Shown here one piece after another: positions 20,702 through 64,000 of a stretch of 64,000 nucleotides of DNA. Numbering within the stretch: the first letter of the stretch is position 1; each line of letters begins with the position of its first letter. The translations under genes were made by a program, and so were the position numbers. The notes under the pieces were generated by a model. It searched no databases and was not told where the DNA came from. It saw nothing but the letters and a program-made list of their open reading frames with translations. The stretch is from IMG/VR virus record IMGVR_UViG_3300027710_000011, positions 212,773 to 276,772 of that record; one strand, 5' to 3'.

Positions 20702-20722
20702 ACACGACCTACTCGATCTTGT

Positions 20723-21463: not shown

Positions 21464-21494
21464 AGGAGTTCTTTCTCAGATGCTCAGGTCAGGA

Positions 21495-22925
21495 TCAGTT
21501 GACGCGCGTCAACAACAGCTGGCCAGAAACCCAGTAGGTGATGTAATCGATAGCCGCAATGGCTGCCGCTTCACGCACATCCAGATCCGGATTGGCTTCA
21601 CGCACATCGCTGATCGACTTCAGAATGCGGTACGCATCCGTATCGTAGAACCAGCTGGTGCCCAGCAAACGCAAGCTCCAAGCAAACAAGTTGCGAGTTT
21701 CTTCGATGCGGCTTTGTTCCAAGGCAGTGTTGAAACGACGCAGGATGATCTCGCGATCATTCAACGGCATCTCGCTGTGAGTGGAGTCAGCCATCAAGCG
21801 GCAGAACTCCGCAGCAGCGGCTTCCTTGTACTTGGTGAACATGCGGTTGTTGAAGTTCAACGCATTCATGGCGGCGTAACGAGACCACGCTGCCTTGCTG
21901 CTTTCCGCATCTGCGTCGATGTCCTTGACGGTCAGCGCAGGGCTCGACTTCAAAGCGTTGCCGAACAACACTTCGTTCGAACCACCCGATTGCAGCCACT
22001 TCACGTAGACCGATTGGTTCACCACGATCTTGCGGTTGTAGCTCGACAGCACGAGGTTGCCGGCTTTCTCACCGCGCTCAGCGTTGTTGATGCGCTGGTT
22101 CAAACGGCTTGCCACTTGCAGACGCAGTTCAGCGATCGTGTCGTTGTACTTGCTCAGCGACACTTGCGTGCCTTCTGCGGGGTTGTCCCACATCGTGCGG
22201 CAGAACAGGAAAGCAGCCAGCAAGCGCTCAGTGCCTTCTCCGGTTTGCTGGAAAAAGGCGCTGGCCGTTGTGGTCGGCGCATTCATGCCATCCGAGAACA
22301 GACGCTCCCAGACTTCTGCGATGAACGTAATGCCTTTGGCATCAGCCCATGCATCGATGACGGCATCCAGAGCTGGTGCGCCAGTGCGCAGCATCTGCAG
22401 CATGCCTTCAGTGCTGACCGAAGGGAGACCCATCAAAGGCATCTCGAAATCGCGAGACAGAACGGTCTCACCCTTCTTGATTGAATCCAGAATGCTGCTG
22501 TCAGCCAAAGGCGCTGGCAGAGCTTGCGTCACGATTTCAAAATCGTGCGCAATAATTCCGCGATAAACAGACACAGCTTCATCCAAATGACGAACAAATT
22601 CTTCGACAGCAGGAGCAACGACAGTACGGGCGTGAGCCAGATAACCTGTCACCTTGGGAGCGATCAGAGCCACCAGCTCGGATTGAGTCAGCGTGTGTTC
22701 GCAACTGCCAGTAATGCCGTCAGTCGAATTCGCAGCGTACTCGATGCTCGAGCTGCTCAGCACGTGTTGACCGGCGTTGTCTTCAAAAGACGAGATCATG
22801 CCGGGATGGCACGCACGCACGGTCGATTCCAGCAGTGAGCCAGGCAAAGCGCTGACGATAACGCCGCGTGCTTCGAAATTGGCGACTTGGTCGATCGCGG
22901 TAGAGATTGCTTGTGCGGACAACAT
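21495..22925 (-). CDS. Virion head protein (phiKZ gp177-like)
   Basis: 476 aa, helical; syntenic position between the RNAP beta gene and the protease; codon bias. Confidence 0.65.
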   Translation of the reverse strand: MLSAQAISTAIDQVANFEARGVIVSALPGSLLESTVRACHPGMISSFEDNAGQHVLSSSSIEYAANSTDGITGSCEHTLTQSELVALIAPKVTGYLAHARTVVAPAVEEFVRHLDEAVSVYRGIIAHDFEIVTQALPAPLADSSILDSIKKGETVLSRDFEMPLMGLPSVSTEGMLQMLRTGAPALDAVIDAWADAKGITFIAEVWERLFSDGMNAPTTTASAFFQQTGEGTERLLAAFLFCRTMWDNPAEGTQVSLSKYNDTIAELRLQVASRLNQRINNAERGEKAGNLVLSSYNRKIVVNQSVYVKWLQSGGSNEVLFGNALKSSPALTVKDIDADAESSKAAWSRYAAMNALNFNNRMFTKYKEAAAAEFCRLMADSTHSEMPLNDREIILRRFNTALEQSRIEETRNLFAWSLRLLGTSWFYDTDAYRILKSISDVREANPDLDVREAAAIAAIDYITYWVSGQLLLTRVN

Positions 22926-22928
22926 TTC

Positions 22929-23126
22929 TTAGACCCCCAGATTCTTCTCAGACAGGTTCTTTTCAAAACCCGATTGAGCCATGTTGAGCATCATTTCTTT
23001 GGTCAGTGGAGTGCCACCCACTGTGTCTGCCACTTCTTGCCCGAGGACTTGCTCGGCAATTGCGGCAACCAGCTCGCCGCCTGCAGCGAGTGTCACCGCT
23101 GTGGTGACCGATTGTTTGTGTTTCAT
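22929..23126 (-). CDS. Small virion-associated protein (65 aa)
   Basis: GAGG RBS; stop lies 3 nt before the next ATG; position matches a small gene in related phages. Confidence 0.6.
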   Translation of the reverse strand: MKHKQSVTTAVTLAAGGELVAAIAEQVLGQEVADTVGGTPLTKEMMLNMAQSGFEKNLSEKNLGV

Positions 23127-23152
23127 TTTTGCCTCTGAAAAGAAAGCGGTTA

Positions 23153-23190
23153 AAAACTAGGGAGTACTGGGCAATGAAGCCCAGTACTCC
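23153..23190 (-). terminator. Terminator after the vRNAP beta gene
   Basis: GGAGTACTGGGC-AATGAA-GCCCAGTACTCC, then a T run on the minus strand. Confidence 0.7.
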
Positions 23191-23197
23191 TTCACAC

Positions 23198-50819: not shown

Positions 50820-52172
50820 ATGTACGCTTCCAAAAGTTTTTGCAACGTCGGGCAGTTCATGTCCAACGTTCCAGGTACCAACTCGCCAATTGGCGAAATT
50901 ACTCCTGATGGACTGACCTTCTCTCGGGAAGTTGGGATCTACGAAGACCCAACCATCGCTGGCTTCACCTTGTACAACTTCAAGAGCGCTACCGATGGTC
51001 AAGGTGGTGGTCCGGTAGTTGTTCCCGGCAGCCTTGTCAGCAAATCGATTGCGTTCATGCGGTTTTTGGTCAACACCATCACCGCAGCTCCTGGTCAGGT
51101 TTACGTTGATGAACTGCTTCAAGCACTGGTAACATACGGCGCTCAAAACGGTATCAGCGAGATCACTCTGGGCGCGATCGTCAAGCACGATCAAGTCTGG
51201 TGCCCAGATTGGGTAAAGTTCAAAATGGATTCCCTGGCTCTTACAGCCGGCGGAGCAGTCATTGATAACGAGAACACCGTCTGGTTGTCGAGCGCTGCTT
51301 TTGAGACACAATACAGCGAGTATCAAATCGTCGTGGTTCCTCCCATCGACAATTTGGATTTGTTTTTTGGAACAGGTGCTAGCGTTGTCAACATGATCAA
51401 CGCCATCAGTTTCCCACAAATCATTGACCGAATGAACGTGTTTCGTGGAGGTCATCCTGAGACGACTTATCGTTCGGATGAGTACGAATACATCTTCGCG
51501 CTGAACAGCACTATTCGCAAAAATGTGAACTGGCCTGTTCTGATCTACGGACCTGCTGGCAACAACATCGATGCGATCAAGGACGCATTGATCGAGTACA
51601 TCCTGGCCCACAGTTCGTACGATCGGGCTGCTTGGACGCAGATCTTCCCAGACATCTTCAAGCGTACTGAGTTCATCCTTGCGCCTGTGTGGCAGAATTA
51701 TGCGATTGCCAATCGCACACAAGCTGCCGGTGTATATTCGCCAATCGGTTTACTTACTGAGATGGCGACATACATCAAACGTGTGGCTCCAGCTTACGTG
51801 GCGACGCATGTTGACGCGAACGCTTGCTTGCTGGGTCATCCGTATCGGTCGTTGAATCTGATGGCAATTGGCGGGATCGATAACCGCGATGCGAAGTATC
51901 GGATCAGTCAGATCTTCCCTGACTACATCAATGTCTCCACAACGAGCATTGAGTTCAACCGCATGGCGCCTGAGACACAGTTGTGGGCCTTGGCCTTGGC
52001 AGAGATGATCATCTTGGCTGAAACCATGAACAAGTACACCACGTTGCCGCAAGGCTACATGAAGGTGACACGTGATGGAATTCTCTATATTGTCAAGACC
52101 ATCGGGAAGATCCAGTACCTGATCGCTACAAAGCGTTCGGTGTACGACCTCCTTGGACTGGTGTACGATTGA
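50820..52172 (+). CDS. Conserved phiKZ-like virion structural protein (450 aa)
   Basis: GGAG RBS; SPIGEIT, QYSEYQIVVVPP, IYGPAGN, WTQIFPDIFKRTEF and FPDYI motifs. Confidence 0.7.
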   Translation: MYASKSFCNVGQFMSNVPGTNSPIGEITPDGLTFSREVGIYEDPTIAGFTLYNFKSATDGQGGGPVVVPGSLVSKSIAFMRFLVNTITAAPGQVYVDELLQALVTYGAQNGISEITLGAIVKHDQVWCPDWVKFKMDSLALTAGGAVIDNENTVWLSSAAFETQYSEYQIVVVPPIDNLDLFFGTGASVVNMINAISFPQIIDRMNVFRGGHPETTYRSDEYEYIFALNSTIRKNVNWPVLIYGPAGNNIDAIKDALIEYILAHSSYDRAAWTQIFPDIFKRTEFILAPVWQNYAIANRTQAAGVYSPIGLLTEMATYIKRVAPAYVATHVDANACLLGHPYRSLNLMAIGGIDNRDAKYRISQIFPDYINVSTTSIEFNRMAPETQLWALALAEMIILAETMNKYTTLPQGYMKVTRDGILYIVKTIGKIQYLIATKRSVYDLLGLVYD

Positions 52173-52183
52173 GAGGCTAAGCA

Positions 52184-52798
52184 ATGTCTCTAGTCCCTCC
52201 AATCAACGTAGCTGGTATTTACAGCCTTTCGGGGCCGTGGAGCCAGGACGTTGTTCCCAATACTCCATACACGTGCGTTGCCGTCCGTAAGTTCGTAGAC
52301 ATCATCCGTAAAGGCGAGGATCCATTCACGCTTTATTACGCACCGAAGTCTTTGAATGTTGCGGACTATCAGCGAGACAGTCAGTACGGAGAATGCATCG
52401 TCACTCTGCGAAGCGCAGGCGGGCAATTCATCTACGTACCTACGTCTTACATTCAATCATACCCTAACCAATCCGGCATTCCTTACGCTGTTATGGTCCT
52501 GGGTGTGAATCTGGGTGCAGTTCCAAATCACGCTGACTTGTCAGTAATTCGCCAGAAGATCTCTGATGTCGTTCAGGGGTACTACGGGATTACGCCGTCA
52601 ATTCAACAAGCAGTGATCTCTGAGGTGGTGACGAAGACCGCAGCTGATCACGGAGCAATCGAAGCAGCGCGCCAATCAGCGATCATCGAGCGGCAGACGG
52701 ATTATTCAAAGCTACTCTTGGCTGAACAAACGATCCTGTCTCAAGCCCAGAAGATCGCTCAACTCGAAGCGTACATCAAAGCTCGTTTACCGATTTAA
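52184..52798 (+). CDS. Conserved putative virion protein (204 aa)
   Basis: PPINVAGIYSL, YVPTSYIQSYP and a C-terminal coiled coil. Confidence 0.65.
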   Translation: MSLVPPINVAGIYSLSGPWSQDVVPNTPYTCVAVRKFVDIIRKGEDPFTLYYAPKSLNVADYQRDSQYGECIVTLRSAGGQFIYVPTSYIQSYPNQSGIPYAVMVLGVNLGAVPNHADLSVIRQKISDVVQGYYGITPSIQQAVISEVVTKTAADHGAIEAARQSAIIERQTDYSKLLLAEQTILSQAQKIAQLEAYIKARLPI

Positions 52799-52809: not shown

Positions 52810-53238
52810 ATGTATCTCGATCTATCATTCGTTGTTGAGCTGGTGACTGATGTCTGCACTTGGGCTGAACGTAATCCTGTCTTTGCGACCATCGTCGCAA
52901 CAGGTGCTTTCCTGCATGCGTTTTTTGCACTGTACGTCGTCGTGACGGCTTTGTACAGAGCGCATCTGGATAAGACGATGACCAAGGTAGGTTACATCCT
53001 GGGCTACCCGTTGCTGATCCTGGCTGGATTGGTTGACGTTCTTGCTCAGTTCACCATCTTTACCATTGTCTTTGTGGAGCTTCCGCAAGAACTCTTGGTG
53101 ACGGATCGCCTGCGTCGATACCTGATCGGTGGCGGAGATGTGTATGGTTGGCGTTACCGCGCTGCCAAGTACATCTGCAGCAAACTGCTGGACTACTTTG
53201 ATCCACGTGGCGGCCATTGCATTCCGTTGAAGACTTGA
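52810..53238 (+). CDS. Phage membrane protein with 2-3 TM segments
   Basis: Hydrophobic helices followed by ELLVTDRLRRY..GWR...C..LLDYFDP.GGHC. Confidence 0.7.
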   Translation: MYLDLSFVVELVTDVCTWAERNPVFATIVATGAFLHAFFALYVVVTALYRAHLDKTMTKVGYILGYPLLILAGLVDVLAQFTIFTIVFVELPQELLVTDRLRRYLIGGGDVYGWRYRAAKYICSKLLDYFDPRGGHCIPLKT

Positions 53239-53245: not shown

Positions 53246-53277
53246 ATAAAGAGGAGGGTAGATCCCTCCTCTTTATG
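53246..53277 (+). terminator. Hairpin terminator ending TTTATG
   Basis: ATAAAGAGGAGGG-TAGAT-CCCTCCTCTTTATG. Confidence 0.75.
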
Positions 53278-53320: not shown

Positions 53321-56008
53321 ATGAAAGATATTAGTGCAGGTGACTCGTCACCGAAGCTCGATAAGAGTTCTTTGATCGATTCTGCTACCGCGCTAAATCT
53401 GTGGTATAAGTTCGTCGAACTCACAAATGACTTTACCACTCCTCTCCAGTTCAACAAAGCCACGTTGACTATCGGTAACACTGTGTCTCGTAACACAGCA
53501 ACTGACCAACGTGGCTTCGAATTGCAAGACACCACAGGTACCAAGATCGCAGCACTGCGTAGTCCAGCTGCATCTAATTTGGTTTACTTGGAATCTGCAT
53601 TGGGTTATCCATTGTCTCTGCGCGTAAGTAGCGCGGAGATTGCGCAAGTCAGTGCTACCGGCTTGGGTATCGGAATGTCAGCAGCTGAGAAGCTGTCAAT
53701 TGGTAGCGCTTCTAACAACACAAATAACGCACTCGCAATTTATGCTCAAACATCTGCAGGAAGCCAAAGCTTTGCTTCCATCACTCAAGAAGCGGCGGTT
53801 GGTTCCACAAACTTCCGTTATGGTAGTGGCCCTGGTGGTACTACTAAGCATCTGGTCTTCACTGGTAGTGGTGGGAACCAAACATTTCTGACATCCACTG
53901 GTGACCTTGGTCTGAACTCCAATGGTCCAGCAAGCGTCCTTTATTCTGGCGCTCGTTACTTGACGGTTCAAGGCCCGTCTGGTCCAGGCGTTCTTGAATT
54001 CGCATCAAGCGTAGCCGATGCAACGCTTGGTGTTCGCGGTGTTGTCTGCTTGTCAGACATTGGCAATACAGTACTCAGTGACAAACGTGCCGCAGCGTTT
54101 GACATGGGTACAGTTGGTACCACTGCAAATAACAGAGGCGGTTACGCTCGCATCCTTGCTAAGGCTGACGGCGGTGCTTTGGCTGAAGCAGCTGTCTTTT
54201 ATAGCAACCAAGTCAAGATCACTCCTGCCTTGGTTGTTACAAACACAATCACCGCTACGTCCTTCAGAGCCAACCAAGGTCTATCATCCGGTGACAACGG
54301 CGTCACGGGTTATGCTTTCGGAACTGATGGCGATACAGGACTGTTCGCAGTTGGTTCCGGAATCGCATCGACGAATCTAAGAATGACGCTGAACGGCGTC
54401 AACTGTGTCGATACATCTATCGTTAGCGGTAGTCCTTACACCGCTTTTGGTTCAACCGGAGCAAGACCTGTTGCAATCAGCACCTCAAATGGAACGATTT
54501 CATTCAAAGGTGATCCAGGCGGCTGGGCTATGGGTCCAGTATGGTTAAGCAATGATGGAACGCAAGTTGCCACCATTGCTGGTGTTGGCGGCGGAAATAC
54601 GTTTAGCTACATCAGTATTGGTCCGACATACAGCGCACCATGGATGATGATTGTTCCTTCGACTGGTATTCATTTCCAGATCAAGGCTCAATCCAATTCG
54701 ACACTAGGTCAGATCAAAGATCAGTCAGCAGCGACTACTGCTGGCTTGGTTGTGCAGACCAATCAATCAGGTGTGCTGGGTGTAGACGGTGCTTTCATCA
54801 CTTACATGAACAAGGACGGCAGTAAGCTGTTCTCGGCAGGTATGGATGCCGACGGTGAATTCAAAGTAGGTGGTGGATCTCTTGGTGCTTCAGCTAAGAA
54901 GATTTATCACGAAGGATTCAACCCAGGCGCAATGACGTACCGTGCGACATTTCCTATCGCTGATGCTGATTTGTATCGGCCATCAGGCTTGTATCAAATG
55001 CAGAACGTTGGAAATACTGCTTCGTTTGGTGTTTTGGAGTTTTCAGACATTGGCGGCTCCGCATCACGTGTTCAGCAAGTCTTCTGGTACGGGAACAATC
55101 CAGGACAACCAGCATCTGGCGATGAGATGTATTTTCGCGTCGCCCGTGACTCCCAGTCAAATTTTGACTCGTATCCAACCTTAGGTAATCGCGTCTGGCA
55201 CTCTGGCAATATCTCGCCGATGACAACCAGTACAGATTATGCGACACCCACTGGGTTTGGAATGCGCGCTACAGTTGCTCCGACTAACGTTGGTGATACG
55301 TGGTTCAGTACGCCGTCCTACGCTACAGGGCAAGGTGATGGTCGCACTCATTTTGGCTATTTGATTGACGCAAGTGCCGCTAAGACGTGCTATAACTACA
55401 TTCGTGGTGCACGTACGTATTTCGATGGCTCTGTCAGTATGGGCGCCGTCGGTATTGTCTCCGGACGTTCAGCGAAGTTGACAATCTCTTATTCCGGTGA
55501 TGGTTCACAGCACGGTATCACTCTGAATAGCTCATCCATCAACGCAACGGCTGCCATCATGTTCTGTACCGGTGGTACCGACGTGTCACCAGGAACATTG
55601 CAAGGTAGCATCAGTATCTTGAACAACACGGTTTCCTACAACCAAACGTCTGATTTGCGTATCAAGGAAAACGTCAAGCCTGCTGCTTGGGCCACTAGCA
55701 AGATCAAAGCCATTGAAGTCATCGAGTATGATCTCAAAGATACAAAGACACATGTCGAGTACGGCTTTGCTGCTCAGCAACTCAACGCCGTCATCAAACA
55801 AGCGGTCACACCTGGTAATGAAGGTGAGATCGAGGAAGCTGGTGACGTGTGGCAGGTTGATAACTCAAAGATCGTTCCTCTGCTGGTTAAGTCTCAGCAA
55901 GAAACGATCGAAGCGCTTGAAAGTACGACCAATGCATTGAAAGATGCGTTGGAAATGATCTCCGTTCTTCAATCCGAACTCCGTGATCTGAAGAAGAAGG
56001 TGGGGTAA
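53321..56008 (+). CDS. Tail fibre/spike with a C-terminal S74-type intramolecular chaperone
   Basis: Gly/Ser/Thr-rich beta repeats; fibre motifs IYHEGFNP and VWHSGN; QTSDLRIKENV...GFAAQQL...VDNSKIVPLLVKSQQE plus a coiled coil. Confidence 0.85.
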   Translation: MKDISAGDSSPKLDKSSLIDSATALNLWYKFVELTNDFTTPLQFNKATLTIGNTVSRNTATDQRGFELQDTTGTKIAALRSPAASNLVYLESALGYPLSLRVSSAEIAQVSATGLGIGMSAAEKLSIGSASNNTNNALAIYAQTSAGSQSFASITQEAAVGSTNFRYGSGPGGTTKHLVFTGSGGNQTFLTSTGDLGLNSNGPASVLYSGARYLTVQGPSGPGVLEFASSVADATLGVRGVVCLSDIGNTVLSDKRAAAFDMGTVGTTANNRGGYARILAKADGGALAEAAVFYSNQVKITPALVVTNTITATSFRANQGLSSGDNGVTGYAFGTDGDTGLFAVGSGIASTNLRMTLNGVNCVDTSIVSGSPYTAFGSTGARPVAISTSNGTISFKGDPGGWAMGPVWLSNDGTQVATIAGVGGGNTFSYISIGPTYSAPWMMIVPSTGIHFQIKAQSNSTLGQIKDQSAATTAGLVVQTNQSGVLGVDGAFITYMNKDGSKLFSAGMDADGEFKVGGGSLGASAKKIYHEGFNPGAMTYRATFPIADADLYRPSGLYQMQNVGNTASFGVLEFSDIGGSASRVQQVFWYGNNPGQPASGDEMYFRVARDSQSNFDSYPTLGNRVWHSGNISPMTTSTDYATPTGFGMRATVAPTNVGDTWFSTPSYATGQGDGRTHFGYLIDASAAKTCYNYIRGARTYFDGSVSMGAVGIVSGRSAKLTISYSGDGSQHGITLNSSSINATAAIMFCTGGTDVSPGTLQGSISILNNTVSYNQTSDLRIKENVKPAAWATSKIKAIEVIEYDLKDTKTHVEYGFAAQQLNAVIKQAVTPGNEGEIEEAGDVWQVDNSKIVPLLVKSQQETIEALESTTNALKDALEMISVLQSELRDLKKKVG

Positions 56009-56039
56009 AAAGAGAGACCCATTAGGGTCTCTCTTTATG
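56009..56039 (+). terminator. Hairpin terminator ending TTTATG
   Basis: AAAGAGAGACCC-ATTA-GGGTCTCTCTTTATG. Confidence 0.75.
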
Positions 56040-56095
56040 CTGTTCTTTTTTATTGCGAATTTTGTGTACTTTGCATCTAATTCTGAGGATAACAA

Positions 56096-59000
56096 ATGTC
56101 TCAAATCGACGATCTTTCCGCTGGCGACAGTACACCGAAGCTGGCAAAGGCTTCGTTGATGTCGATCACGCAAGTGCTTAACCGCATGGCGTACACGATT
56201 AAGACGCCTGATAGCGCAGTGGCGCCAGACGCGTTGCAGATTTCTACAGACGGGAATATGAGTCTGGGAAATGTTCCTTTGGTCTATTCAACTGTTGGTC
56301 GTAACTTCTCGGTGTCCAACACCAATAGCACTGGGACAATTTCTGATAAGGCGCAAATCTCTATTTCCAGTGTTAATAATAGCGCCGTAATGAGTCTGCA
56401 GGCCTCTGGTGCCAGTAGCTCTTATTTCAATGCAATTGAGTTTTGCAAAGCCGACACGACTGTCGAGTTTCGCATTAGGCACAAACTCACCGAGACCGCT
56501 TTGAAAATTGATGCGACTAACAATAACGTTAATCGGTCAATTGTTCGTTTCAATACCACCGGCGAGATGGTTCTTGGTGACACCAACTCTGTCGTTGGCA
56601 AACTGATGATTATCGGTGGTACTGCTGTGAACGGTGGCGAAGCCGTAATGTTTGCGCAGTCAAGTGATCCCGCAAACGTACCTGCTTTGATCACAGGTAC
56701 AAACGGCGGCTCGCTGCAAGTCTGTGGCGGCAACAATGCGCTTAATAGTGCTCGTGGTGCCCAGATCGATTTCAACTCCGGAAGTTTTGCCGGTGGCTCG
56801 GGTCACCTGGTATTCCGCGCTGGTACAAATACCGGCGGAGCACCGTCTCCTGAAGTAGGACGTTGGTATCCAGGAGGTTTCTTAGGTATCAACACCGGTA
56901 TTGAAGGTGCGGCCAGCATGCTTCACGTCCGCGCTCCTACCGGGGTTCGCGGCCGCGTGATTGCTGAATCCAACGCCGATATGGCGGGTTTCACAGCGCG
57001 CCGTACCAATGGCACGTATGCTGCTCCTACCGCTATTCAAAGCGGTGACACACTTGGCTTTTTCAACACACACGGTTCAACTGGTGTTTCGTTGAATTAT
57101 GCGGTTGGCGCAACTATTCAAATGTTTGCAACGCAGAACTGGTCCACCAGCGCAGCTGGTTCTGCAATGCAGTTTACTACGGTACCAAACGGTACAACGT
57201 TGTCGCAATTAAGCTTGTGGTTGGACCATAACGGTTACGCTGGCTTTAACACCACTGCACCACCGGCACAGTTCACTGTAGCTTATGGCACCGGTGTTAA
57301 CGGGTACGAACTTCAAACGAGCGCCGCTTCTGTTGGAATTTCAACTCGTAATCGCAGCACCAGCGTGTTTACTCAACTAGCTACCGCAGCAAAACGCCAT
57401 GTGTGGTCTGTTGGTGACGTCACGCCCGTGGACGCAATGTTGTTGGAGAACAACGGCCTCCTGGCAGTTGGAACAAGTTTGGCATCCGGCGGAACAGGTA
57501 ACACCGCGATTGAAGGCAGAATCATCGCTGCCACGCAACCGTTGAATACTGGTCTGACCATTGCTGATTCCGGTAACGGCGCTGCTGGCATCTATTCTGG
57601 TTTGAAATTCAAACTAGGCGCCCGTCACGCTACTTCAGGCGGCATTGAGTATTTTGACATCACGACTCGACCTGGTGATGCGAGTAACGGTGTTAGCAAC
57701 CAGTCCGATATGGCGTTGATTCGACTGGAGGCTTCAAAGAGCCTGACGCCTCGTCTGTTGTTGCAACCTTCCGGTGGTCTGCAGCAAGTGGTTGTTGGTG
57801 CAGGTACTTCCAACGGCAGCGGTAAGCTCGTTGTCGAGCAAGAAACCAGTTACGCCTCTCCAGGCATTACCGTCATCGGTAAGAGCGGAGCGACTTCGTC
57901 TGCGGACATTGTGATCAGTCGTAACGGCGCCGTCAGTAGCCTACAGGGAAAGATGCCTTGGCTGCAATTTGATTCGACCGATGCTGCGTTCGCTGGAAAC
58001 AACTCTGCTGCAATCGGTGCTGCTGGAAACAGTGTTGAGATCTGGAACTACGTTAGTAACGTATGGACGCAGAAGTTTGTTGTCGGACAAAGTACCACAA
58101 CAAGCAACAACAGCTTCATCGTTAACGGCGGTTCTGCCACTGCTCTTACAGTGCGAGGAGCTGCTGCTTCCAATAGCAGCGTTATCTTGCAGAGCAATAC
58201 CAGTAACGGCGCAGCTCATTGGATCACTTCGAAGCTCGATGGCTCTTTCCATTTGGGCGGTAATGGCGCAGCTGATCCAGCTGTTGGACCGATTGCTGTG
58301 TCGTCGAACATGCGCAGTGTTGGCTTGTTTGCACCAAGCGTAGCAAACCTTGGGAATACATACAGTCACAGCGGGACAGCTCGTGTATTGAGTGTCTATA
58401 ACCCAGACACAACGCTGAACGCCCAGGCCCACATCTTTTTAGGCGTAGGCAATACGACTCAAGCAAGCAGCGCAATCGGCGGAGTTTCGTTCGTTCTTCC
58501 AGGTATCAACAGCGACGGAACAGCGCGTGTCGCGAACATTGGTGCCTCCACCGATGACTTGCATGAGTCAAGCTCGCCAGCCGGCATGATCACGATGGCG
58601 ACAAAAGGTATTGCTAACAGCACTGCCACTACACGTCTGGTGATTCGGAGCTCTGGTAACTTGACATTGGGTAACACGGTTACACAAGACCTTGCGCGGT
58701 TGTACATTTATAACGAAGGTCGCAACGTAGATGGTGTTCGTGTAGACATGAACGACGCGCCCAACAACGCTTCGAACTTTGTTTCCATGAGAAACAACAC
58801 CTCCGGTTACTCAATGACTTTCGTAGTCAGCGGGAACATTGCAGGATCGATCACGCATCCGTCAGCAACGACGACGGCGTACGGAACATCGTCAGATGCT
58901 CGTATCAAGGAAAACGTCAAACCCTCAGAGGACAGTGGCGAGATCATTGATGCCTTGGAGATCGTTCAATACAACATGAAAGCAGACGGTTATTACATCC

Positions 59001-59236
59001 CGTTTGGTTTCGTTGCGCAAAAGCTATACACCGTTTATCCAACGGCTGTTATCGCTGGCGACACGAGTTTGGACATCGGTCCCGATTCAAAGATTTGGGG
59101 TATTGACGCTACGAGACTTGTGCCCGTGGTCGCTAAGGAAGTTCAATCGCTGCGTAAGCGCGTTGCACAACAAGATGCAGATATCGCTGAGCTGCGAGAA
59201 CTGGTTAACTTGTTGCTGCAGGAAAAGGGGAAGTGA
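56096..59236 (+). CDS. Second tail fibre/spike with an S74-type chaperone
   Basis: Repeated triple-beta-type units (GFLGINT...SMLHV, GYAGFNTTAP, RLVIRSSGNLTLG); TSSDARIKENV...GFVAQKL...LVPVVAKEVQ. Confidence 0.85.
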   Translation: MSQIDDLSAGDSTPKLAKASLMSITQVLNRMAYTIKTPDSAVAPDALQISTDGNMSLGNVPLVYSTVGRNFSVSNTNSTGTISDKAQISISSVNNSAVMSLQASGASSSYFNAIEFCKADTTVEFRIRHKLTETALKIDATNNNVNRSIVRFNTTGEMVLGDTNSVVGKLMIIGGTAVNGGEAVMFAQSSDPANVPALITGTNGGSLQVCGGNNALNSARGAQIDFNSGSFAGGSGHLVFRAGTNTGGAPSPEVGRWYPGGFLGINTGIEGAASMLHVRAPTGVRGRVIAESNADMAGFTARRTNGTYAAPTAIQSGDTLGFFNTHGSTGVSLNYAVGATIQMFATQNWSTSAAGSAMQFTTVPNGTTLSQLSLWLDHNGYAGFNTTAPPAQFTVAYGTGVNGYELQTSAASVGISTRNRSTSVFTQLATAAKRHVWSVGDVTPVDAMLLENNGLLAVGTSLASGGTGNTAIEGRIIAATQPLNTGLTIADSGNGAAGIYSGLKFKLGARHATSGGIEYFDITTRPGDASNGVSNQSDMALIRLEASKSLTPRLLLQPSGGLQQVVVGAGTSNGSGKLVVEQETSYASPGITVIGKSGATSSADIVISRNGAVSSLQGKMPWLQFDSTDAAFAGNNSAAIGAAGNSVEIWNYVSNVWTQKFVVGQSTTTSNNSFIVNGGSATALTVRGAAASNSSVILQSNTSNGAAHWITSKLDGSFHLGGNGAADPAVGPIAVSSNMRSVGLFAPSVANLGNTYSHSGTARVLSVYNPDTTLNAQAHIFLGVGNTTQASSAIGGVSFVLPGINSDGTARVANIGASTDDLHESSSPAGMITMATKGIANSTATTRLVIRSSGNLTLGNTVTQDLARLYIYNEGRNVDGVRVDMNDAPNNASNFVSMRNNTSGYSMTFVVSGNIAGSITHPSATTTAYGTSSDARIKENVKPSEDSGEIIDALEIVQYNMKADGYYIPFGFVAQKLYTVYPTAVIAGDTSLDIGPDSKIWGIDATRLVPVVAKEVQSLRKRVAQQDADIAELRELVNLLLQEKGK

Positions 59237-59311
59237 TTTATGAAGAAGGGGTCTGGTGTAGTGTTAGCCAGACCCCTGTCAGGGTTTTGATAAAAGTTAA
59301 AAGGACAATCG

Positions 59312-61048
59312 ATGAGTGATCCTATTCAAAAACCGGTAGTCGTGAGAAACTCTCTCACGGTTATCGGACCAATTGGAGCAGCCACACTGGTTACGACCGG
59401 GCTCGCTACTTTGGCAAGCGCAAATATTCAAGGCACGGCAGTCGTTGGCACCTCACTGATTGTTTCTGGTCCTGTAACTGGAACTTCATTTAGCGGTATT
59501 GGCACCTCGTTGTCTGCACTGAATGCATCCAACTTAGAATCAGGTACTGTACCAATTGCTCGACTCGGCACAAGTGGTGTAGCAGGTGCTACCACGTTCC
59601 TGCGGGGTGACAATAGCTGGAGCAGTGTAGTTACGGCAGTAACCGTTGTAGCTGCTAACGGTATCTCAGGTTCTATTGCAACCCAAGGTACCACTCCAGC
59701 AATCACATTGACTCTGGGCGCCATCACGCCCACCAGTATCAATACAGCAGGAAGTGTGACGGCAGCTTCTTTCAGTGGTTCTGGCGCTAGCCTGACTTCT
59801 CTGAATGGTACTAACGTTTCCAGCGGCCTCATTAATCCAGCTCGACTGGGTACAGGTACACCAAGCTCTGCCTTCTTCTTGCGAGGAGACGGTACTTGGA
59901 ATTCTGTTGTTGCTATTGCATTGCAAGGCTCAGGCTTGGCTAATACGAATGCAGCGATGGGTTCATCGGTAGCGGTCGGTACTTATGCCGCTACCGCTGG
60001 TGTGACATGGATCAGCTCTGCTTCAGCTACGAACGGAAAATCGTGGCAGATGTGGACAACGCCATCCGGGAATTTGTTCCTAGGTACCTTGAGTGATGAT
60101 GGTGCTTCGAATACTGTTGGCGTTACGTTCACTCGTAGCGCTCTGACGGTTACTAATATTGCTTTTGCGGCCACAACTGTGACAATGAATGCCGCAGTCA
60201 GCGGCACGTCGTTCAGCGGTTCGGGTACGGGTTTGACCGCATTGAATGCGTCTAACTTGGCATCAGGTACCGTACCGACTGCGCGTTTGGCGTCAGGCAC
60301 CGCTAATAACCAAACGTTCCTACGCGGCGATGGTTTCTGGGCCGTTCCTTCAGCTTCTGGAGATATCTCAGTAACTACTGTTAACAGTAGTGGAATGGGA
60401 ACTTTTGGTAGCTTGTCGGTTAATGGCGCCACAACGCTGAGTACGTTGTCCGTGAATTCAACAACGACTCTTGCGAGTTTGACTGTAAATTCAAACGCAA
60501 GCTTCAGCGCTGGTTTCACCGCTAATGGTTCCGCAAGCATTGGTGGTTCATTGTCAGTTGCTGGATCGTTGACGACTGGCGACGTCACCGGCACGGTGTT
60601 CATTCCAACTTCTAACACTCCGCCGGCGTACGGCGTGTACGAAGGTAGTACGGTTGGCGGAGTCGGTATTGCTACAGGTGGTCTGGAACGTTTGTCAGTT
60701 TCACCTTCCGGCGTAATTACGCAATCTGGGCCAGTGGTTAGCATTATCAATACGTTAACCTCGCCTGTTGTGGATTGTTCAAAAGGCAACTACTTCAAGA
60801 GAACGTACACCAGTGCACAAACCTGGTCGTTCATCAACGTCCCAGCGGGCGTCTTCTACAGCTTCATCCTGCGCATCACTCGCAGTGGTTCTGCCGCTGC
60901 TCAAACATGGCCGTCAAGTGTCAAATGGTCTGGTGGTGCTGTGCCGGTCCTATCCAACACCAACGGCGGTAATGACATTTTTGAGTTCATGACAGATGAC
61001 GGCGGCGTCAGCTGGCGCGCATTCCGTCGTACCACGACAACTACGTAA
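59312..61048 (+). CDS. Fibre protein with three internal repeats
   Basis: Three copies of FSGxGxxLxxLNxxNxxSGxxxxARLxxG...FLRGDxxW; C-terminal TWPSSVKW.GG..P....DIFEF.T.DGG.SW domain. Confidence 0.8.
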   Translation: MSDPIQKPVVVRNSLTVIGPIGAATLVTTGLATLASANIQGTAVVGTSLIVSGPVTGTSFSGIGTSLSALNASNLESGTVPIARLGTSGVAGATTFLRGDNSWSSVVTAVTVVAANGISGSIATQGTTPAITLTLGAITPTSINTAGSVTAASFSGSGASLTSLNGTNVSSGLINPARLGTGTPSSAFFLRGDGTWNSVVAIALQGSGLANTNAAMGSSVAVGTYAATAGVTWISSASATNGKSWQMWTTPSGNLFLGTLSDDGASNTVGVTFTRSALTVTNIAFAATTVTMNAAVSGTSFSGSGTGLTALNASNLASGTVPTARLASGTANNQTFLRGDGFWAVPSASGDISVTTVNSSGMGTFGSLSVNGATTLSTLSVNSTTTLASLTVNSNASFSAGFTANGSASIGGSLSVAGSLTTGDVTGTVFIPTSNTPPAYGVYEGSTVGGVGIATGGLERLSVSPSGVITQSGPVVSIINTLTSPVVDCSKGNYFKRTYTSAQTWSFINVPAGVFYSFILRITRSGSAAAQTWPSSVKWSGGAVPVLSNTNGGNDIFEFMTDDGGVSWRAFRRTTTTT

Positions 61049-61053
61049 AAGGA

Positions 61054-61090
61054 CATAAAGAAGGAAGCGGTTGGCGACCGCTTTCCTTTA
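61054..61090. terminator. Hairpin terminator with CATAAA on the 5' side
   Basis: CATAAAGAAGGAAGCGGT-TGGCG-ACCGCTTTCCTTTA. Confidence 0.6.
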
Positions 61091-61231
61091 AGGTAGTTTT
61101 TTACCCGAAATGATTTGACAACAGTTATTGGATCTGACAAGGTTTATTTACGTAAGCATGTCGATCATCAGGGATTTACTACTCTTAAAGAGAAGTGTTC
61201 TTCATTCGCCATAAACTCTGCAGAGGTTTCG

Positions 61232-62611
61232 ATGTCAGATATCAGTACAGAAAATCTAGACAATGATCTAGACTCACCGTTGCTCGCGCGACCAAGCCTT
61301 CTTGACGCCGTCACTCGTGTGAGCGCTTTGAGCCGCTATATCCAGACCGCTGATCCCGCGACTTTGCTGGTGACGAACAAACTGTCTGTGATTGGTGATG
61401 TTCGTGCGAACAGCAACCTTCACGTTCAAGGACAACTCAGCTTCGGTAATGCCGGCACAGCCGGTTATGTGCTGACCTCTCAAGGTCCTGGTCTGCCTGC
61501 GACCTGGAGCACAGTGGCTGCTGGTGATAAGTACAAAGCTACTTCCACAAGCAACCTGACAATTGATGCGGTCACTCCAAAGACCGTGGTTATCGAGCCA
61601 GATCTGTCGTATTCGACAGGCCAATCTGTCGTGGTAACAAATAACGCAACCCGCTATATGGGTGGCACTGTTCAATCCTATGACCCCGCGACTGGCAGCT
61701 TGGTATTTGCAAACGAATACCAGCTCGGAAGTGGCTCTTTTTCGTCATGGACGGTGAACATCGCTGGTAAGAAGGGAACTGATGGTACCAACGGTACTGC
61801 TGGTTCTTCGTGGTACAACGGCACCACTGTTCCTTCGGCCGGTACCGGCGTAGACAACGACTACTACATCAACAAGACCAATGGTGACTACTACCAGAAG
61901 CAGGTAGGTGCTTGGGTCTTGCAAGGCAACTTGACGGGTCCTTCGGGATCTGGTGGTGGAGGCGGTAGCTCTACCGTCTACTCGACTACGTCCAGGTATC
62001 AGGCAATTACCACGGCCGGTGAAGGCGTGACGATTGTTTCCTCAGCCTCGGTTAAAACAGGTATTTCTTGGTCACGCGTAGGATCTACGATGACCATCGT
62101 AGATCCTGGACACAATCGGTTGTCGGGTCAGCGCGTCATTCTGAGAAATACCAACGTACCTGTGTTTGACACACTTACGCTCACCCTAACCGCCGACACT
62201 TTCGATGTCACTTGTGCTGACACTGGTCCAACCAGTGGTACAGCTGCGGCCTATTCGATGGGCTTCACATTTGCCTATGTTGGCCCAGCAAACGCAAAAA
62301 CTGGCGGCGTCGTCAGCGCTCCTCCTGGATCCGATTGCGTGTTGCTGAGTATTCGTATCCACATGGCTGCGAATACTCGTGCTACTACCACTTGGCAACT
62401 CACAGTTCCAAAGGGTAACGTGAACGGCGCAGGCGGCCAAACCGGTCTGGACGACATGTCTATTCCAGTGCAGCAGATTCGTCAAGACAGCATTGCGCTA
62501 CCGGCAGTGGGTAACACCATTGCGTGCAACGTAGGTGGAGATTGGGGCGTGTATACGTTTGGCGCTCTGCCAGCCGCTACAACGGGTATTCACATCCTCG
62601 CTAACTTCTAA
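61232..62611 (+). CDS. Fibre protein with a short collagen-like segment
   Basis: Start set at ATG 61232 (GAGG RBS); GKKGTDGTNGTAGSSWYNGTTVP...DYYINKTNGDYYQK...W; shares an N-terminal motif with the fibres at 53321 and 56096. Confidence 0.75.
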   Translation: MSDISTENLDNDLDSPLLARPSLLDAVTRVSALSRYIQTADPATLLVTNKLSVIGDVRANSNLHVQGQLSFGNAGTAGYVLTSQGPGLPATWSTVAAGDKYKATSTSNLTIDAVTPKTVVIEPDLSYSTGQSVVVTNNATRYMGGTVQSYDPATGSLVFANEYQLGSGSFSSWTVNIAGKKGTDGTNGTAGSSWYNGTTVPSAGTGVDNDYYINKTNGDYYQKQVGAWVLQGNLTGPSGSGGGGGSSTVYSTTSRYQAITTAGEGVTIVSSASVKTGISWSRVGSTMTIVDPGHNRLSGQRVILRNTNVPVFDTLTLTLTADTFDVTCADTGPTSGTAAAYSMGFTFAYVGPANAKTGGVVSAPPGSDCVLLSIRIHMAANTRATTTWQLTVPKGNVNGAGGQTGLDDMSIPVQQIRQDSIALPAVGNTIACNVGGDWGVYTFGALPAATTGIHILANF

Positions 62612-62620: not shown

Positions 62621-63313
62621 GTGGATACTCGTCCCATCAACGCATCGCTTTTAGTAGACGCTTTCACGCCTACTGGAAATCCCGGCGAGTACACGTTTGA
62701 CAATGCGTTCTACAACAACCAGGCTGACCAAACTGGTAATGGTGCTTACGACGTTCAGGTAGATTTTGTACTTTACGTACCTGCCACGAACTTCAACACC
62801 GGCGGGTCTCTTACCGGCGTTGTTCATCGTTATAAGTTAACAACTGTTACTGTTGTAGACAGTAGCCACATTAGTGGCACGATGATTTGGGATGAACTCG
62901 GCCAAGAAGGTTTAGAAGTCCCAACTAACGGCGCCGGTTGTGGTTTGAGTCAGGCAAGTCCGTCTTCAAAGTACGGATATGCGCCAGCTGACGCCCTTTA
63001 CTCTGAGTTACCACCAGGTTTTACCGTTCAGTCTGTTCAGACTGATCTGTGGAACATCACTGACATTGCATCGCCTGGGCCAGGGCCTGGTCCAAGTGGT
63101 TCTGTCTACAAACGAACTATCGGCGATTCTGTTGCCGATAGCTTCACCCTTCATCACGCGCTGAATACCCTGGACATAAGCGTCACAGTTTATGAACTGA
63201 GTACCGGTGCTGATGTGTACGCTGGCGTCGTTCGAACGGGTCCGAACGATGTTAGGATTGATTTCGCGTACCCAATTGAAACGAACAGTCATCGCGTGAT
63301 TGTTCGTTCCTGA
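62621..63313 (+). CDS. Putative virion fibre-associated protein (230 aa)
   Basis: AAGGAG RBS; PGPGPGP linker followed by a small beta domain (TIGD....FTLHHALNT.D..V.VY). Confidence 0.7.
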   Translation: MDTRPINASLLVDAFTPTGNPGEYTFDNAFYNNQADQTGNGAYDVQVDFVLYVPATNFNTGGSLTGVVHRYKLTTVTVVDSSHISGTMIWDELGQEGLEVPTNGAGCGLSQASPSSKYGYAPADALYSELPPGFTVQSVQTDLWNITDIASPGPGPGPSGSVYKRTIGDSVADSFTLHHALNTLDISVTVYELSTGADVYAGVVRTGPNDVRIDFAYPIETNSHRVIVRS

Positions 63314-63377: not shown

Positions 63378-64000
63378 ATGTTCCCAAAGTTTCACGGTAT
63401 TGCCCTGGCAGCGAACAGCTGGATCAGCAACGCAGTTGTGGAGAACCTGGCTGCTGACCCGACGCCCCTGGGTGCCGGTCGCATCTGGTACAACACTTCC
63501 GACAAGGGCCTGAAGTTCAGCTCGCTCGACGCTGGCGGCGCCATCGTTGTGCAAGTGGTCGCCACTGGTGCCGACGTTGCTGCTGCTGTTGCAGCCATCG
63601 CCGCTCTGGGCGCTCGCGTCACTGCCGTTGAAGGCAGCTACATCAACAAGGACGGTTCCGTTGCCTTCACTGGCGATGTGAATGCTGGCGGCAACAAGGT
63701 CGTCAACGTTGCCAATGGCACGGTTGGTTCGGATGCAGTGAACTATAGCCAGCTGCAAGCTGCTATCACTTCGCTGGCCAACGCCTTCCTGTACGTCGGT
63801 ACCGTTGCTGGCGGTGCTGACGCTGGTGCTGCCTTCGACATGTCGACGTCGGCCGACGTGACCGTTGGTGCCTACTACAAGGTTTCCGCTCCCGGTTACT
63901 TCAAGGTCGGCGCAGCTGGCGTCCCCTTCTTCGCCAACACCAACGACGGCCTGGTCTTCAACAGCCTGAGCGGTGTTGACGTCATCGACAACACCAACAG
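63378..64000 (+). CDS. Fibre/adhesin-like virion protein, truncated by the window edge (MFPKFHGIALAANSWISNAVVENL...)
   Basis: Translated by hand: AGGAG RBS, frame open to 64000. Contains GRIWYNT, a coiled coil, and the YadA-neck-like NKVVNVANGTVGSDAVNYSQL; very strong codon bias. Confidence 0.8.
   Translation, partial: MFPKFHGIALAANSWISNAVVENLAADPTPLGAGRIWYNTSDKGLKFSSLDAGGAIVVQVVATGADVAAAVAAIAALGARVTAVEGSYINKDGSVAFTGDVNAGGNKVVNVANGTVGSDAVNYSQLQAAITSLANAFLYVGTVAGGADAGAAFDMSTSADVTVGAYYKVSAPGYFKVGAAGVPFFANTNDGLVFNSLSGVDVIDNTN

Follow-up and report, generated by a model that had tools for sequence, protein, structure and literature searches.

Why do several tail-fibre proteins of one phage, most of them unrelated to one another along their bodies, begin with the same short peptide, and what might that peptide bind? 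The question arises from a 64,000-nucleotide window, which is the last 64 kb of the 276,772-bp genome of an uncultured phiKZ-like jumbo phage from a subsurface metagenome. The genome encodes homologues of phiKZ gp128, gp129, gp130, gp131, gp139, gp140, gp157, gp161, gp164 and gp165 in conserved order, supported by matches to PDB chains, and its nearest cultured relatives, RP12 and FLC9, are about 40% identical. A preliminary description of the window proposed that three fibres, here called F1, F2 and F4, share an N-terminal docking peptide of roughly 30 residues, diverge directly after it, and are separated by hairpins in the manner of cassettes. The features of this locus (fibre array A) are listed below, together with the candidate partner protein, P0079, which lies elsewhere in the genome.

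Table. Features of fibre array A and its surroundings (window positions unless stated), with the candidate partner protein.
Position	Strand	Feature	Support and remarks
50820..52172	+	450-aa virion protein, homologue of phiKZ gp157 (brace of the outer peripheral baseplate)	PDB 9xqd chain PHIKZ157, E 1e-55; phrog_3293; role from PMC13250141
52184..52798	+	204-aa DUF7194 protein, homologue of phiKZ gp161 ("horn" of the inner baseplate)	PF23824, 208.9 bits; PDB 9xqs PHIKZ161, E 2.5e-37
52810..53238	+	142-aa hydrophobic protein, probably membrane-bound, at the head of array A	Conserved in the close relatives; absent from RP12 and FLC9
53246..53276	+	13-bp perfect hairpin after the 142-aa gene	z -5.2
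53321..56008	+	Fibre F1 (895 aa): plug peptide, divergent body, C-terminal Peptidase_S74 intramolecular chaperone domain (residues 777-829)	PF13884, 35.9 bits (cut-off 22)
53321..53440	+	Plug peptide of F1 (about residues 1-40)	Invariant Pro at residue 11
56009..56036	+	12-bp perfect hairpin after F1	z -6.0
56096..59236	+	Fibre F2 (1046 aa): plug peptide, body paralogous to the 1099-aa fibre of array B, S74 domain (residues 933-985)	PF13884, 38.5 bits (cut-off 22)
56096..56224	+	Plug peptide of F2 (about residues 1-43)	Pro at residue 14
59247..59277	+	11-bp hairpin after F2	z -3.3
59312..61048	+	Fibre F3 (578 aa), without the plug peptide	Shares repeat modules with the 1466-aa fibre that lies beyond the window
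61063..61085	+	10-bp hairpin after F3	
61232..62611	+	Fibre F4 (459 aa), ATG start with GAGG upstream	Plug closest to the widespread family; used in the complex model
61232..61366	+	Plug peptide of F4 (residues 1-45)	Residues 11-17 and 20 of all three copies form the modelled interface
62621..63313	+	230-aa protein following the F4-type fibre	Follows it in all six related phiKZ-like contigs examined (229 aa, by gene order only, in contig L014)
63378..64000	+	Start of a YadA-stalk-like fibre gene, cut by the end of the contig	The array continues at the start of the genome record
genome 74119..78396 (outside the window)		P0079 (1425 aa): DUF7941 N-domain, about 59 repeats of 18-19 residues, C-terminal candidate socket domain	PF25613, 50.7 bits at the N-terminus (cut-off 27)

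The observation itself is confirmed and extends further than first described. All three open reading frames exist; the ATG of F4 has a GAGG six bases upstream and is the start used by the orthologues, while a longer TTG frame from 61115 is probably not used. The three N-termini share [ST]-P-x-L-x-[KR]-x-S-L, with flanking similarity over about 35-45 residues. To ask whether this could be chance, a profile hidden Markov model built from only these three N-termini was searched against all 3176 six-frame ORFs of the genome, a check that had been suggested at the outset. It recovered two further proteins, both at their N-termini and both large fibre proteins encoded in a second array (array B) at the other end of the genome: one of 1099 aa (E 2e-10) and one of 697 aa (E 2e-6). 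The next best hit had an E value of 0.32, indicating that the similarity is not chance. Five fibres of this phage therefore carry the peptide.

Divergence after the motif holds for most pairs of fibres but not all. F1 and F2 align only over residues 1-74 and in the C-terminal S74 domain, and the 697-aa protein aligns with F1 and F2 only over about 45 residues. By contrast, F2 and the 1099-aa protein are paralogues along most of their length. S74 domains above the gathering score were also found in the 1099-aa fibre (28 bits) and in P0012, a gp131-like fibre (27.4 bits), whereas F4 and the 697-aa fibre lack this domain. The hairpins are real: perfect stems of 10-13 bp follow the stop codons of the 142-aa gene, F1, F2 and F3 (z-scores of -3.3 to -6.0 against shuffled sequences), although most lack a T-tract and a terminator scan as a whole showed no enrichment. 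The amphipathic helix said to follow the motif is not supported as stated, since hydrophobic moments are not above those of shuffled sequences, although the spacing of hydrophobic residues looks like that of a coiled coil.

Additional evidence that the peptide is under selection came from comparisons within and between genomes. Between related genomes, the first 50 residues are the best-conserved window of F2 (76% identity, against 26-70% elsewhere) and the joint best-conserved window of F1 (66%, against 16-66% elsewhere). Among the paralogues, 7-19 of 33 residues are identical without conservation of the third codon base, so selection acts on the protein, and this is not gene conversion. A profile search of 1.84 billion representative proteins returned 51 clusters at E<=1e-3, and in 48 of these the match starts within the first 10 residues, in proteins of 60-1357 aa. 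The bodies of these proteins differ, and include S74 fibres, pectate-lyase-like proteins, a GDSL esterase, and a collar domain together with Gp10_C. Neither this family nor that of the candidate partner domain described below has a solved structure or a Pfam entry.

A candidate partner for the peptide emerged from gene order in small uncultured phages. In siphovirus-like contigs, the gene carrying the peptide lies directly after that of the large tail-tip protein, whose C-terminal domain contains a Trp-rich stretch. The C-terminal 125 aa or so of those tip proteins match exactly one ORF of the jumbo phage genome, the C-terminus of P0079 (E about 1e-15). Searches starting from this domain found it in 10 distinct loci, all 10 of which have a peptide-bearing ORF immediately downstream. 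One lambda-like contig, L013, fits less well, as its peptide-bearing fibre follows a gpJ that matches the domain profile only weakly (E 0.014).

To investigate whether the two could bind, the P0079 domain was modelled with three copies of the F4 N-terminus, the only one of the five so modelled. The complex scored an ipSAE of 0.76, while the best of three controls scored 0.01. In the calibration of the method, this mark was reached by 58 of 80 solved complexes and 2 of 110 mismatched pairs, but those counts hold only roughly here because custom alignments and a 1:3 design were used. The peptide chains had a pLDDT of at least 89 and the runs agreed in at least 91% of contacts, whereas the socket chain, whose alignment has five rows, had only moderate confidence (pLDDT 65-68). 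In the model, socket residues 41-61, which include the invariant W44, T50, W51, W54 and W57, contact peptide residues 11-17 and 20, which include the invariant P16 and the near-invariant R20; the conserved tryptophans thus meet the conserved D-S-P-x-L-x-x-R core. Modelled alone, the Trp-rich stretch is of low confidence (pLDDT below 50), as expected for a segment that orders on binding.

Taken together, these data favour, with somewhat better than even confidence, a model in which the shared segment of about 35-45 residues is a docking ("plug") module. Its core, [ST]-P-x-L-x-[KR]-x-S-L, is written D-S-P-x-L-A-R in the wider family, and is followed by a probable coiled-coil helix. In this view, three plugs, one from each chain of a trimeric fibre, form a collar around a single Trp-rich stretch (T-W-x-T-L-P-x-T-W-x-x-W-x-x-W) that precedes a small beta-sandwich at the C-terminus of an adaptor protein, and the adaptor in this phage would be P0079. 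By analogy with Goslar and phiKZ, the DUF7941 domain of P0079 would attach to the peripheral baseplate or its filament cloud. The five fibres would then be alternative cargoes of one kind of tether, so a virion could display a mixture of receptor-binding proteins. The analysis establishes the motif, its significance and its five carriers, the wider family, the strict adjacency of socket and plug genes in siphovirus-like contigs, and the single socket homologue in this genome. Binding of the F4 plug to the socket is a modelled result, while it is inferred that the other four plugs use the same socket, that P0079 is in the virion and attached to the baseplate, and that occupancy is mixed.

Several considerations temper this model. 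The four AGD-type plugs, those of F1, F2 and the 697-aa and 1099-aa fibres, differ from the F4 plug at interface positions, and the 697-aa fibre has Glu where the others have Lys or Arg. P0079 lies about 60 kb from both arrays, and one socket type for five fibre types would require competition. The beta-sandwich looks weakly like discoidin or CBM32 folds, so the domain could be a sugar binder that merely co-occurs with the plug.

The interpretation in the preliminary description is partly supported. Its core idea, that a short N-terminal peptide lets unrelated receptor-binding proteins use one attachment site, remains the best-supported reading. However, the adjacent 450-aa and 204-aa proteins, which it put forward for complex modelling, are probably not the socket, being homologues of baseplate components; an anchor it considered much shorter than usual is not unprecedented; and the mixed or switchable host range it proposed is an inference.

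The alternative that survives best, although it is unlikely, is that the plugs dock on the peripheral baseplate proteins encoded next to the arrays, and that the P0079 match is a side issue. The candidates are the gp130 homologue (the fibre platform in phiKZ), the 186-aa DUF7941 protein P0014, the gp157 homologue and the gp131-like fibre bases. In its favour, array B, comprising the 1099-aa, 697-aa and 274-aa genes, lies directly downstream of the gp130 homologue and P0014 on the same strand, while array A follows the gp157 and gp161 homologues. In two relatives, L011 and L014, the arrays are contiguous with the gp130-like and DUF7941 genes. Moreover, the fibres of phiKZ attach beneath gp130 (PMC13250141), and DUF7941 N-domains are proposed to bind linear peptides (PMC13742148). 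On the other hand, RP12 and FLC9 keep gp157, gp161, gp130 and the small DUF7941 gene but lack both fibre arrays, so these proteins are not specific to the plug, and siphoviruses that carry the same plug have none of them. In addition, the apparent DUF7941 linker motif (L-[DP]-G-F) does not resemble the plug.

It is also possible, though doubtful, that the plugs are sub-functionalised, such that only the F4-type peptide uses the P0079 socket and the AGD-type peptides have diverged to bind another site or each other, in which case the fibres would not compete for one site. Consistent with this, F4 is closest to the widespread family, is the only plug-bearing fibre in the distant relative L011, and shares only 7-11 of 33 residues with the others, and the helix parts are specific to each paralogue but conserved between orthologues. 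Nevertheless, one profile recovers all subtypes, and intermediates exist, such as the L-D-A-G-D-D-S-P-K-L-A-R type in proteins P0035, P0037 and P0045 of a phiKZ-like contig. The invariant Pro and the basic residue four positions later, both in the modelled interface, are kept in four of the five plugs.

A less probable reading is that the segment is mainly an N-terminal trimerisation or folding element inherited from a common ancestor, with no specific partner, and that attachment uses other parts of the fibres. The coiled-coil-like spacing after the core, the pLDDT of 77 that the peptide chains reach even in the control without the socket, and the plain paralogy of F2 and the 1099-aa fibre are consistent with this reading. 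However, a trimerisation element would not need a conserved loop (D-S-P-x-L-A-R) at the exact N-terminus across unrelated bodies, nor would it explain the 10-of-10 adjacency to the Trp-rich domain, and several of these fibres already have C-terminal S74 chaperones that drive trimer folding. Finally, a propeptide or assembly tag removed from the mature fibre has no specific evidence in its favour and is very improbable, since, although phiKZ-like phages process many virion proteins, known processing in these phages concerns head proteins, the motif has no recognisable cleavage context, and strict conservation at residue 1 and co-location with a partner domain better fit a retained interaction module.

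The idea of a short docking peptide is already known from Klebsiella podophages, in which a conserved N-terminal peptide of the secondary receptor-binding protein (RBP; KP32 gp38, KP34 gp57) docks on the T4gp10-like branching domain of RBP1 (PMC6872550; PMC13352976). The 29-aa peptide of KP32 RBP2 has been validated experimentally as required for virion incorporation (PMC13352976); it is modular and portable, and is the only element needed to mount an otherwise unrelated RBP on the virion. The fibres described here resemble this system at the level of architecture. They differ in that five carriers rather than one share the peptide, the phage is a jumbo myovirus, and the candidate partner is a Trp-rich stretch plus beta-sandwich; Pfam and PHROG scans of the proteins scanned in both arrays and of the gp131-like fibres found no gp10-like domain.

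A second functional precedent is the RcGTA megatron, a tail-tip protein that ends in a domain holding a trimeric fibre (Rcc00171), the first 45 residues or so of which form a helical rod (PMC7296036). The siphovirus-like contigs have the same gene order logic, although the RcGTA fibre gene is not adjacent to g15. The RcGTA interface was seen only at 6.8 A, with the domain modelled by prediction, and neither the plug nor the socket profile matched any PDB chain sequence, so homology is not shown.

Among chimalliviruses, the phiKZ fibre paralogues gp131, gp133, gp134 and gp135 share a gp131-like N-terminal attachment domain and diverge in the C-terminal part (PMC13250141). This phage has two such proteins, P0011 and P0012, but a tblastn search of the whole genome with phiKZ gp131 and gp133-135 hit only genome positions 19447-23800, which encode these two, and none of the five plug-bearing fibres. 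The phiKZ module is a folded domain that forms hetero-hexamers under gp130, with matches to gp131 here spanning about 330 residues, whereas the plug is about 40 residues long and unrelated in sequence. DUF7941 proteins are known as tail-associated filament proteins (Goslar gp22, gp23, gp86, gp92 and gp161; phiKZ gp126 and gp127), and Goslar has DUF7941 proteins fused to host-recognition domains (PMC13742148). P0014 (66-68 bits) and a 153-aa neighbour (46.9 bits) also carry this domain above the Pfam cut-off, as does P0079. However, P0079 carries no recognition domain of its own, but a putative socket for separate fibres after its short repeats, an architecture not described in the Goslar paper.

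The branched systems of jumbo Klebsiella phages (phiKp24, RaK2 and phiK64-1) and the tailspike complexes of Ackermannviridae likewise place many receptor-binding proteins on one virion, joined through N-terminal parts. Those systems chain the fibres to one another through folded N-terminal domains, and no shared 40-residue peptide with a single common socket is described in the parts of the papers that were read. In Ur-lambda, the side tail fibre Stf is encoded downstream of gpJ and attaches through its N-terminus, but it uses a 91-residue beta-sheet domain, twelve copies of which form a collar around the gpV/gpM junction, a different mechanism and site (PMC12617516).

The 64-kb stretch forms the end of a single-contig virus record of 276,772 bp that is rated complete and has linear ends, and the only sequencing run that contains the stretch in full is a subsurface metagenome. 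Several lines of evidence indicate that the phage is phiKZ-like. A 450-aa protein matches phiKZ gp157 (PDB 9xqd, E 1e-55) and a 204-aa protein matches phiKZ gp161 (PDB 9xqs, E 2.5e-37; DUF7194), while tblastn with phiKZ proteins finds homologues of gp128, 129, 130, 131, 139, 140, 157, 161, 164 and 165. The nearest cultured relatives are Ralstonia phage RP12 and Burkholderia phage FLC9, at about 40% identity. In the phiKZ virion atlas, gp157 braces the outer peripheral baseplate, gp161 is an inner-baseplate "horn", and fibres made of gp131 paralogues attach beneath gp130 (PMC13250141). A megablast search of the fibre region against GenBank phages returned no match, and a search for related loci using the gp157 homologue alone returned nothing. 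A scan for sigma-70 promoters showed depletion rather than enrichment, as expected for a phage with its own RNA polymerases. No alternative genetic code was used.

The preliminary description reported that three otherwise unrelated fibres in this region, here called F1, F2 and F4, share a short N-terminal peptide, and this observation holds. All three proteins exist, and F4 starts at an ATG with GAGG upstream, which is also where its orthologues start; a further fibre of the same array, F3, lacks the motif. A profile built from only these three N-termini was searched against all 3176 six-frame ORFs of the genome, and it recovered two more proteins, both at their N-termini: a 1099-aa fibre (E 2e-10) and a 697-aa fibre (E 2e-6), both encoded on the minus strand near the start of the record. 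The next best hit had an E-value of 0.32, so five fibres carry the peptide. F1 and F2 end in Peptidase_S74 chaperone domains. Most pairs share only the N-terminal segment, plus the S74 domain where present, although F2 and the 1099-aa fibre are full-length paralogues. Gene conversion was considered as the cause of the shared N-termini and was rejected: among the paralogues, 7-19 of 33 anchored residues are identical, but the third codon base is not conserved at those positions, and the similarity is therefore kept at the protein level rather than being due to DNA homogenisation. The genes had also been described as separated by their own hairpins, and strong perfect hairpins do follow the stop codons of the 142-aa gene at the head of the array, F1, F2 and F3. 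By contrast, the proposed amphipathic character of the helix after the core is not supported, since the hydrophobic moment is not significant.

The fibres form two arrays that RP12 and FLC9 lack. Array A is inserted between the gp161 and gp164 homologues, and holds the 142-aa gene, F1, F2, F3, F4, a gene for a 230-aa protein, and a YadA-stalk-like fibre gene that is cut by the contig ends; it continues with small genes of 62 aa (in the relatives' gene calls) and 182 aa, a 1466-aa S74 fibre, and genes of 196 and 136 aa. The two ends of the record that cut the YadA-stalk-like gene share no overlap and the frames do not join when simply concatenated, so a few bases are probably missing or duplicated at the junction, although the record is rated complete. 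The 142-aa protein is hydrophobic, with apparent transmembrane stretches, and is probably a membrane protein, with a role that could lie, for example, in lysis or exclusion; it is conserved in the close relatives and absent from RP12 and FLC9. The 230-aa protein follows the F4-type fibre in all six related contigs (229 aa, by gene order only, in the contig L014), including the distant relative L011, where F4 is the only fibre bearing the peptide. Its C-terminal 65 residues match PHROGs annotated as head decoration or virion protein, and also match part of the 182-aa protein upstream of the 1466-aa fibre, and it may be a fibre accessory or chaperone. F3 and the 1466-aa fibre share repeat modules (36-47% identity), and F3-type proteins vary from 300 to 695 aa between relatives through internal insertions and deletions, which suggests repeat-mediated length variation.

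Array B is on the opposite strand, downstream of the gp130 homologue and a 186-aa DUF7941 protein (P0014), and holds the 1099-aa and 697-aa fibres and a 274-aa protein. The latter, the product of the last gene of the array, has a fibrinogen C-terminal-like domain (PF00147, 26.4 bits against a cut-off of 22) and is conserved after the 697-aa-type fibre in two relatives; it may be a lectin-type distal tip or accessory receptor binder. Two gp131-like fibres (P0011 and P0012) lie beside the gp130 homologue. They carry about 9 and 5 tandem copies of a 58-residue repeat (N-P-H..T-K.Q-V-G-L-G-N-V type) that also matches phiKZ gp132, one of them ends in an S74 chaperone domain, and a 628-aa protein with a poly-Gly tract follows. 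Related contigs of 276,853 and 271,405 bp, and shorter ones, keep the same arrays and the same N-termini. In the 271,405-bp contig (L007), the more distant of the two larger ones, the first 50 residues are the best-conserved (F2) or joint best-conserved (F1) window.

Coordinates of the features discussed. Positions are those of the 64-kb window unless marked as genome (the 276,772-bp record) or by a locus name.
Feature	Position	Strand	Length
gp157 homologue	50820-52172		450 aa
gp161 homologue (DUF7194)	52184-52798		204 aa
Hydrophobic protein, first gene of array A	52810-53238	+	142 aa
Fibre F1	53321-56008		895 aa
Fibre F2	56096-59236		1046 aa
Fibre F3	59312-61048		
Fibre F4	61232-62611		459 aa
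Protein following F4	62621-63313	+	230 aa
YadA-stalk-like fibre gene, cut by the ends of the record	63378-64000 and genome 3-1112		
S74 fibre of array A	L003:2177-6577		1466 aa
Fibrinogen-like protein, last gene of array B	L003:10857-11681 = genome 10857-11681	-	274 aa
Two gp131-like fibres (P0011, P0012)	L009:2447-5203 and L009:5257-7956 = genome 19447-24956	+	
P0079 (outside the window)	L018:2119-6396 = genome 74119-78396	+	1425 aa
ORF with a Trp-rich stretch resembling the socket motif	genome 133710-134615	-	302 aa
Lambda-like gpJ	L013:6218-9988		1256 aa

Evidence that the peptide is a widespread N-terminal module came from a profile of 13 N-termini searched against 1.84 billion representative proteins. 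This search gave 51 proteins at E<=1e-3, with lengths from 60 to 1357 aa, and in 48 of them the match starts within the protein's first 10 residues. The family core is L-D-x-G-x-D-S-P-x-L-A-R followed by L-L-x-A-V-x-x-V-N. The bodies of these proteins differ, and include GDSL esterase, pectate-lyase-like, tail Collar plus Gp10_C, and S74 types. One N-terminus on many receptor-binding or depolymerase bodies is the pattern expected of an attachment module. Pfam has no family for the peptide and no PDB chain carries it; profile searches of the PDB with the peptide (the putative "plug") and with its candidate partner domain (the putative "socket") gave only chance-level hits.

The candidate partner was identified from gene order. 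Outside the jumbo phages, the carriers sit in siphovirus-type tail modules, where the gene lies directly after the large tail-tip protein: after a lambda-like gpJ in the contig L013, and after proteins of about 950 aa in the contigs L012 and L015-L017. The last 125 residues or so of those tip proteins match exactly one ORF of the jumbo genome, the C-terminus of P0079 (phmmer E about 1e-15; profile E 2.7e-55). This protein has a DUF7941 N-domain, about 59 tandem repeats of 18-19 residues with an invariant D-G-F, and the C-terminal domain, and is followed by a 153-aa DUF7941 protein. TRF finds no DNA-level tandem repeat in P0079, and a structure model of residues 1-420 built on a pseudo-alignment of the protein's own repeats reached a pLDDT of only 31. 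P0014 and its homologue in L011 end in P-x-P-[FY]-L-[DP]-G-F, so D-G-F may be the linear motif that DUF7941 N-domains bind.

Searches of IMG/VR and the metagenome collection were then started from the C-terminal domain. Together with the loci already identified, these searches give ten distinct loci (L012, L015, L016, L017, L022, L023, L024, L027, the L028 group and L031), and every one has a peptide-bearing ORF immediately downstream. All of them keep a Trp-rich stretch, T-W-x-T-[IL]-P-x-T-W-x-x-W-x-x-W. The lambda-like gpJ of L013 has two looser Trp/Tyr-rich copies of this stretch and a divergent version of the following beta-sandwich, placed before an extra C-terminal domain, and is followed by a peptide-bearing Collar-domain fibre; the socket may be more widespread in gpJ-like proteins than the profile detects. 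A 302-aa ORF in a non-structural region of the jumbo genome has a T-W-x-G-W-x-S-W-x-x-W stretch near its C-terminus, but this resemblance is probably due to chance. In tblastn searches of 50,697 GenBank phage records, neither the plug peptides nor the socket domain gave a match, and hence no cultured carrier was found at that sensitivity. Searches of GTDB species genomes with the plug or the socket also found nothing, although the patterns were narrow and this is weak evidence of absence. A word search with the P0079 C-terminal region gave no hit, but says little given its length window and word requirement.

Additional support for the pairing came from a model of the P0079 C-terminal domain (150 residues, alignment of 5 rows) in complex with three copies of the F4 N-terminus (60 residues, alignment of 36 rows), which was the only complex modelled. 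The score was 0.76, whereas the best of three controls scored 0.01. In the calibration of the method, that mark was reached by 58 of 80 solved complexes and 2 of 110 mismatched pairs, but these counts hold only roughly here because custom alignments and a 1:3 design were used. The runs agree in at least 91% of contacts, and the pLDDT is at least 89 for the partner but 65-68 for the socket chain, whose alignment is shallow. The modelled interface is formed by socket residues 41-61 (P0079 1316-1336, the Trp-rich stretch) and residues 11-17 and 20 of all three peptide copies. These are the most conserved positions on both sides: W44, T50, W51, W54 and W57 are invariant in the socket alignment, while P16 is invariant and R20 nearly so in the peptide alignment. 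Modelled alone, the socket domain folded with low confidence (mean pLDDT 59), with a pLDDT below 50 for the Trp-rich stretch; the rest is predicted to be a beta-sandwich, for which Foldseek gave only weak discoidin/CBM32-like matches, none at E<=0.001. The low confidence of the stretch on its own fits a segment that becomes ordered when clasped by the fibre trimer. While the model supports binding, it does not show it.

These data suggest a mechanism in which a fibre trimer uses its three N-terminal loops as a collar around one Trp-rich segment of an adaptor. In siphoviruses, the adaptor would be the tip protein itself. In this phage, the putative socket sits on a DUF7941 protein, and proteins of this type are proposed to associate with the chimallivirus peripheral baseplate and to form filaments by head-to-tail binding (PMC13742148). 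Five fibres with the plug and one socket type imply alternative occupancy, and hence mixed display. The proposal in the preliminary description, that a very short anchor lets alternative receptor-binding proteins plug into the same virion site, is thus supported in part. The five carriers, the wider family, the ten adjacent gene pairs and the single matching ORF in this genome are direct results of the sequence analysis, and the docking of F4 on P0079 rests on the model; the occupancy, the virion location of P0079, and the behaviour of the four AGD-type plugs (those of F1, F2 and the 697-aa and 1099-aa fibres) are inferences.

A broader reading is possible, though it remains tentative: the D-S-P-x-L-A-R collar of a fibre trimer and the single T-W-x-x-W-x-x-W stretch ahead of a small beta-sandwich may form an undescribed, portable attachment pair shared by siphoviruses and chimalliviruses. 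In this view, the pair mounts one side fibre per tip-protein chain in siphoviruses, whereas in this jumbo phage the socket has moved to the end of a DUF7941-anchored tether of about 59 repeats and serves five different fibres. Each virion would then carry a stochastic mixture of receptor-binding proteins on long flexible tethers, which would also give the chimallivirus "DUF7941 fibre cloud" a concrete host-recognition function. How jumbo phages mount their many fibres is an open question, and both recent virion structures (phiKZ and Goslar) leave the peripheral baseplate and fibres largely unmodelled. A defined plug-and-socket pair would provide a testable rule for which fibres sit where in this clade, a role for DUF7941 tethers, and a small sequence signature for finding receptor-binding proteins in uncultured phages, given that 51 protein clusters already carry it on unrelated bodies. 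Moreover, both partners are short and modular, so the pair could be explored as a general connector in laboratory phage and tailocin work, as the KP32 peptide has been. Much of this interest depends on binding being confirmed, but if binding fails, the finding still stands as a well-defined and widespread N-terminal fibre motif that has no Pfam family.

Other explanations remain possible. The strongest alternative is that the peptides dock on the gp130 homologue, P0014, the gp157 homologue or the gp131-like bases. This model is supported by gene neighbourhood, but RP12 and FLC9 keep those proteins without the fibres, and the siphovirus carriers have none of them. P0014 in particular was set aside as the socket because its apparent linker motif (L-[DP]-G-F) does not resemble the plug, a judgement that rests on sequence alone. 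A second possibility is that the plugs are sub-functionalised, with only F4 using P0079. A pure trimerisation element is less likely, and a cleaved propeptide is the least favoured explanation.

The concept of a short docking peptide is already known. The 29-aa conserved peptide of KP32 RBP2 is necessary and sufficient to mount foreign enzymatic domains, through a T4gp10-like branching domain (PMC13352976). In phiKZ, the fibre paralogues share a folded N-domain (PMC13250141), and the Ur-lambda Stf uses a 91-residue collar domain (PMC12617516). The pair described here differs from each of these in sequence, in the partner domain and in its distribution, and it has no solved structure. The proposed arrangement in siphoviruses would be functionally like the RcGTA megatron, whose C-terminal domain holds a fibre with a 45-residue N-terminal rod (PMC7296036).
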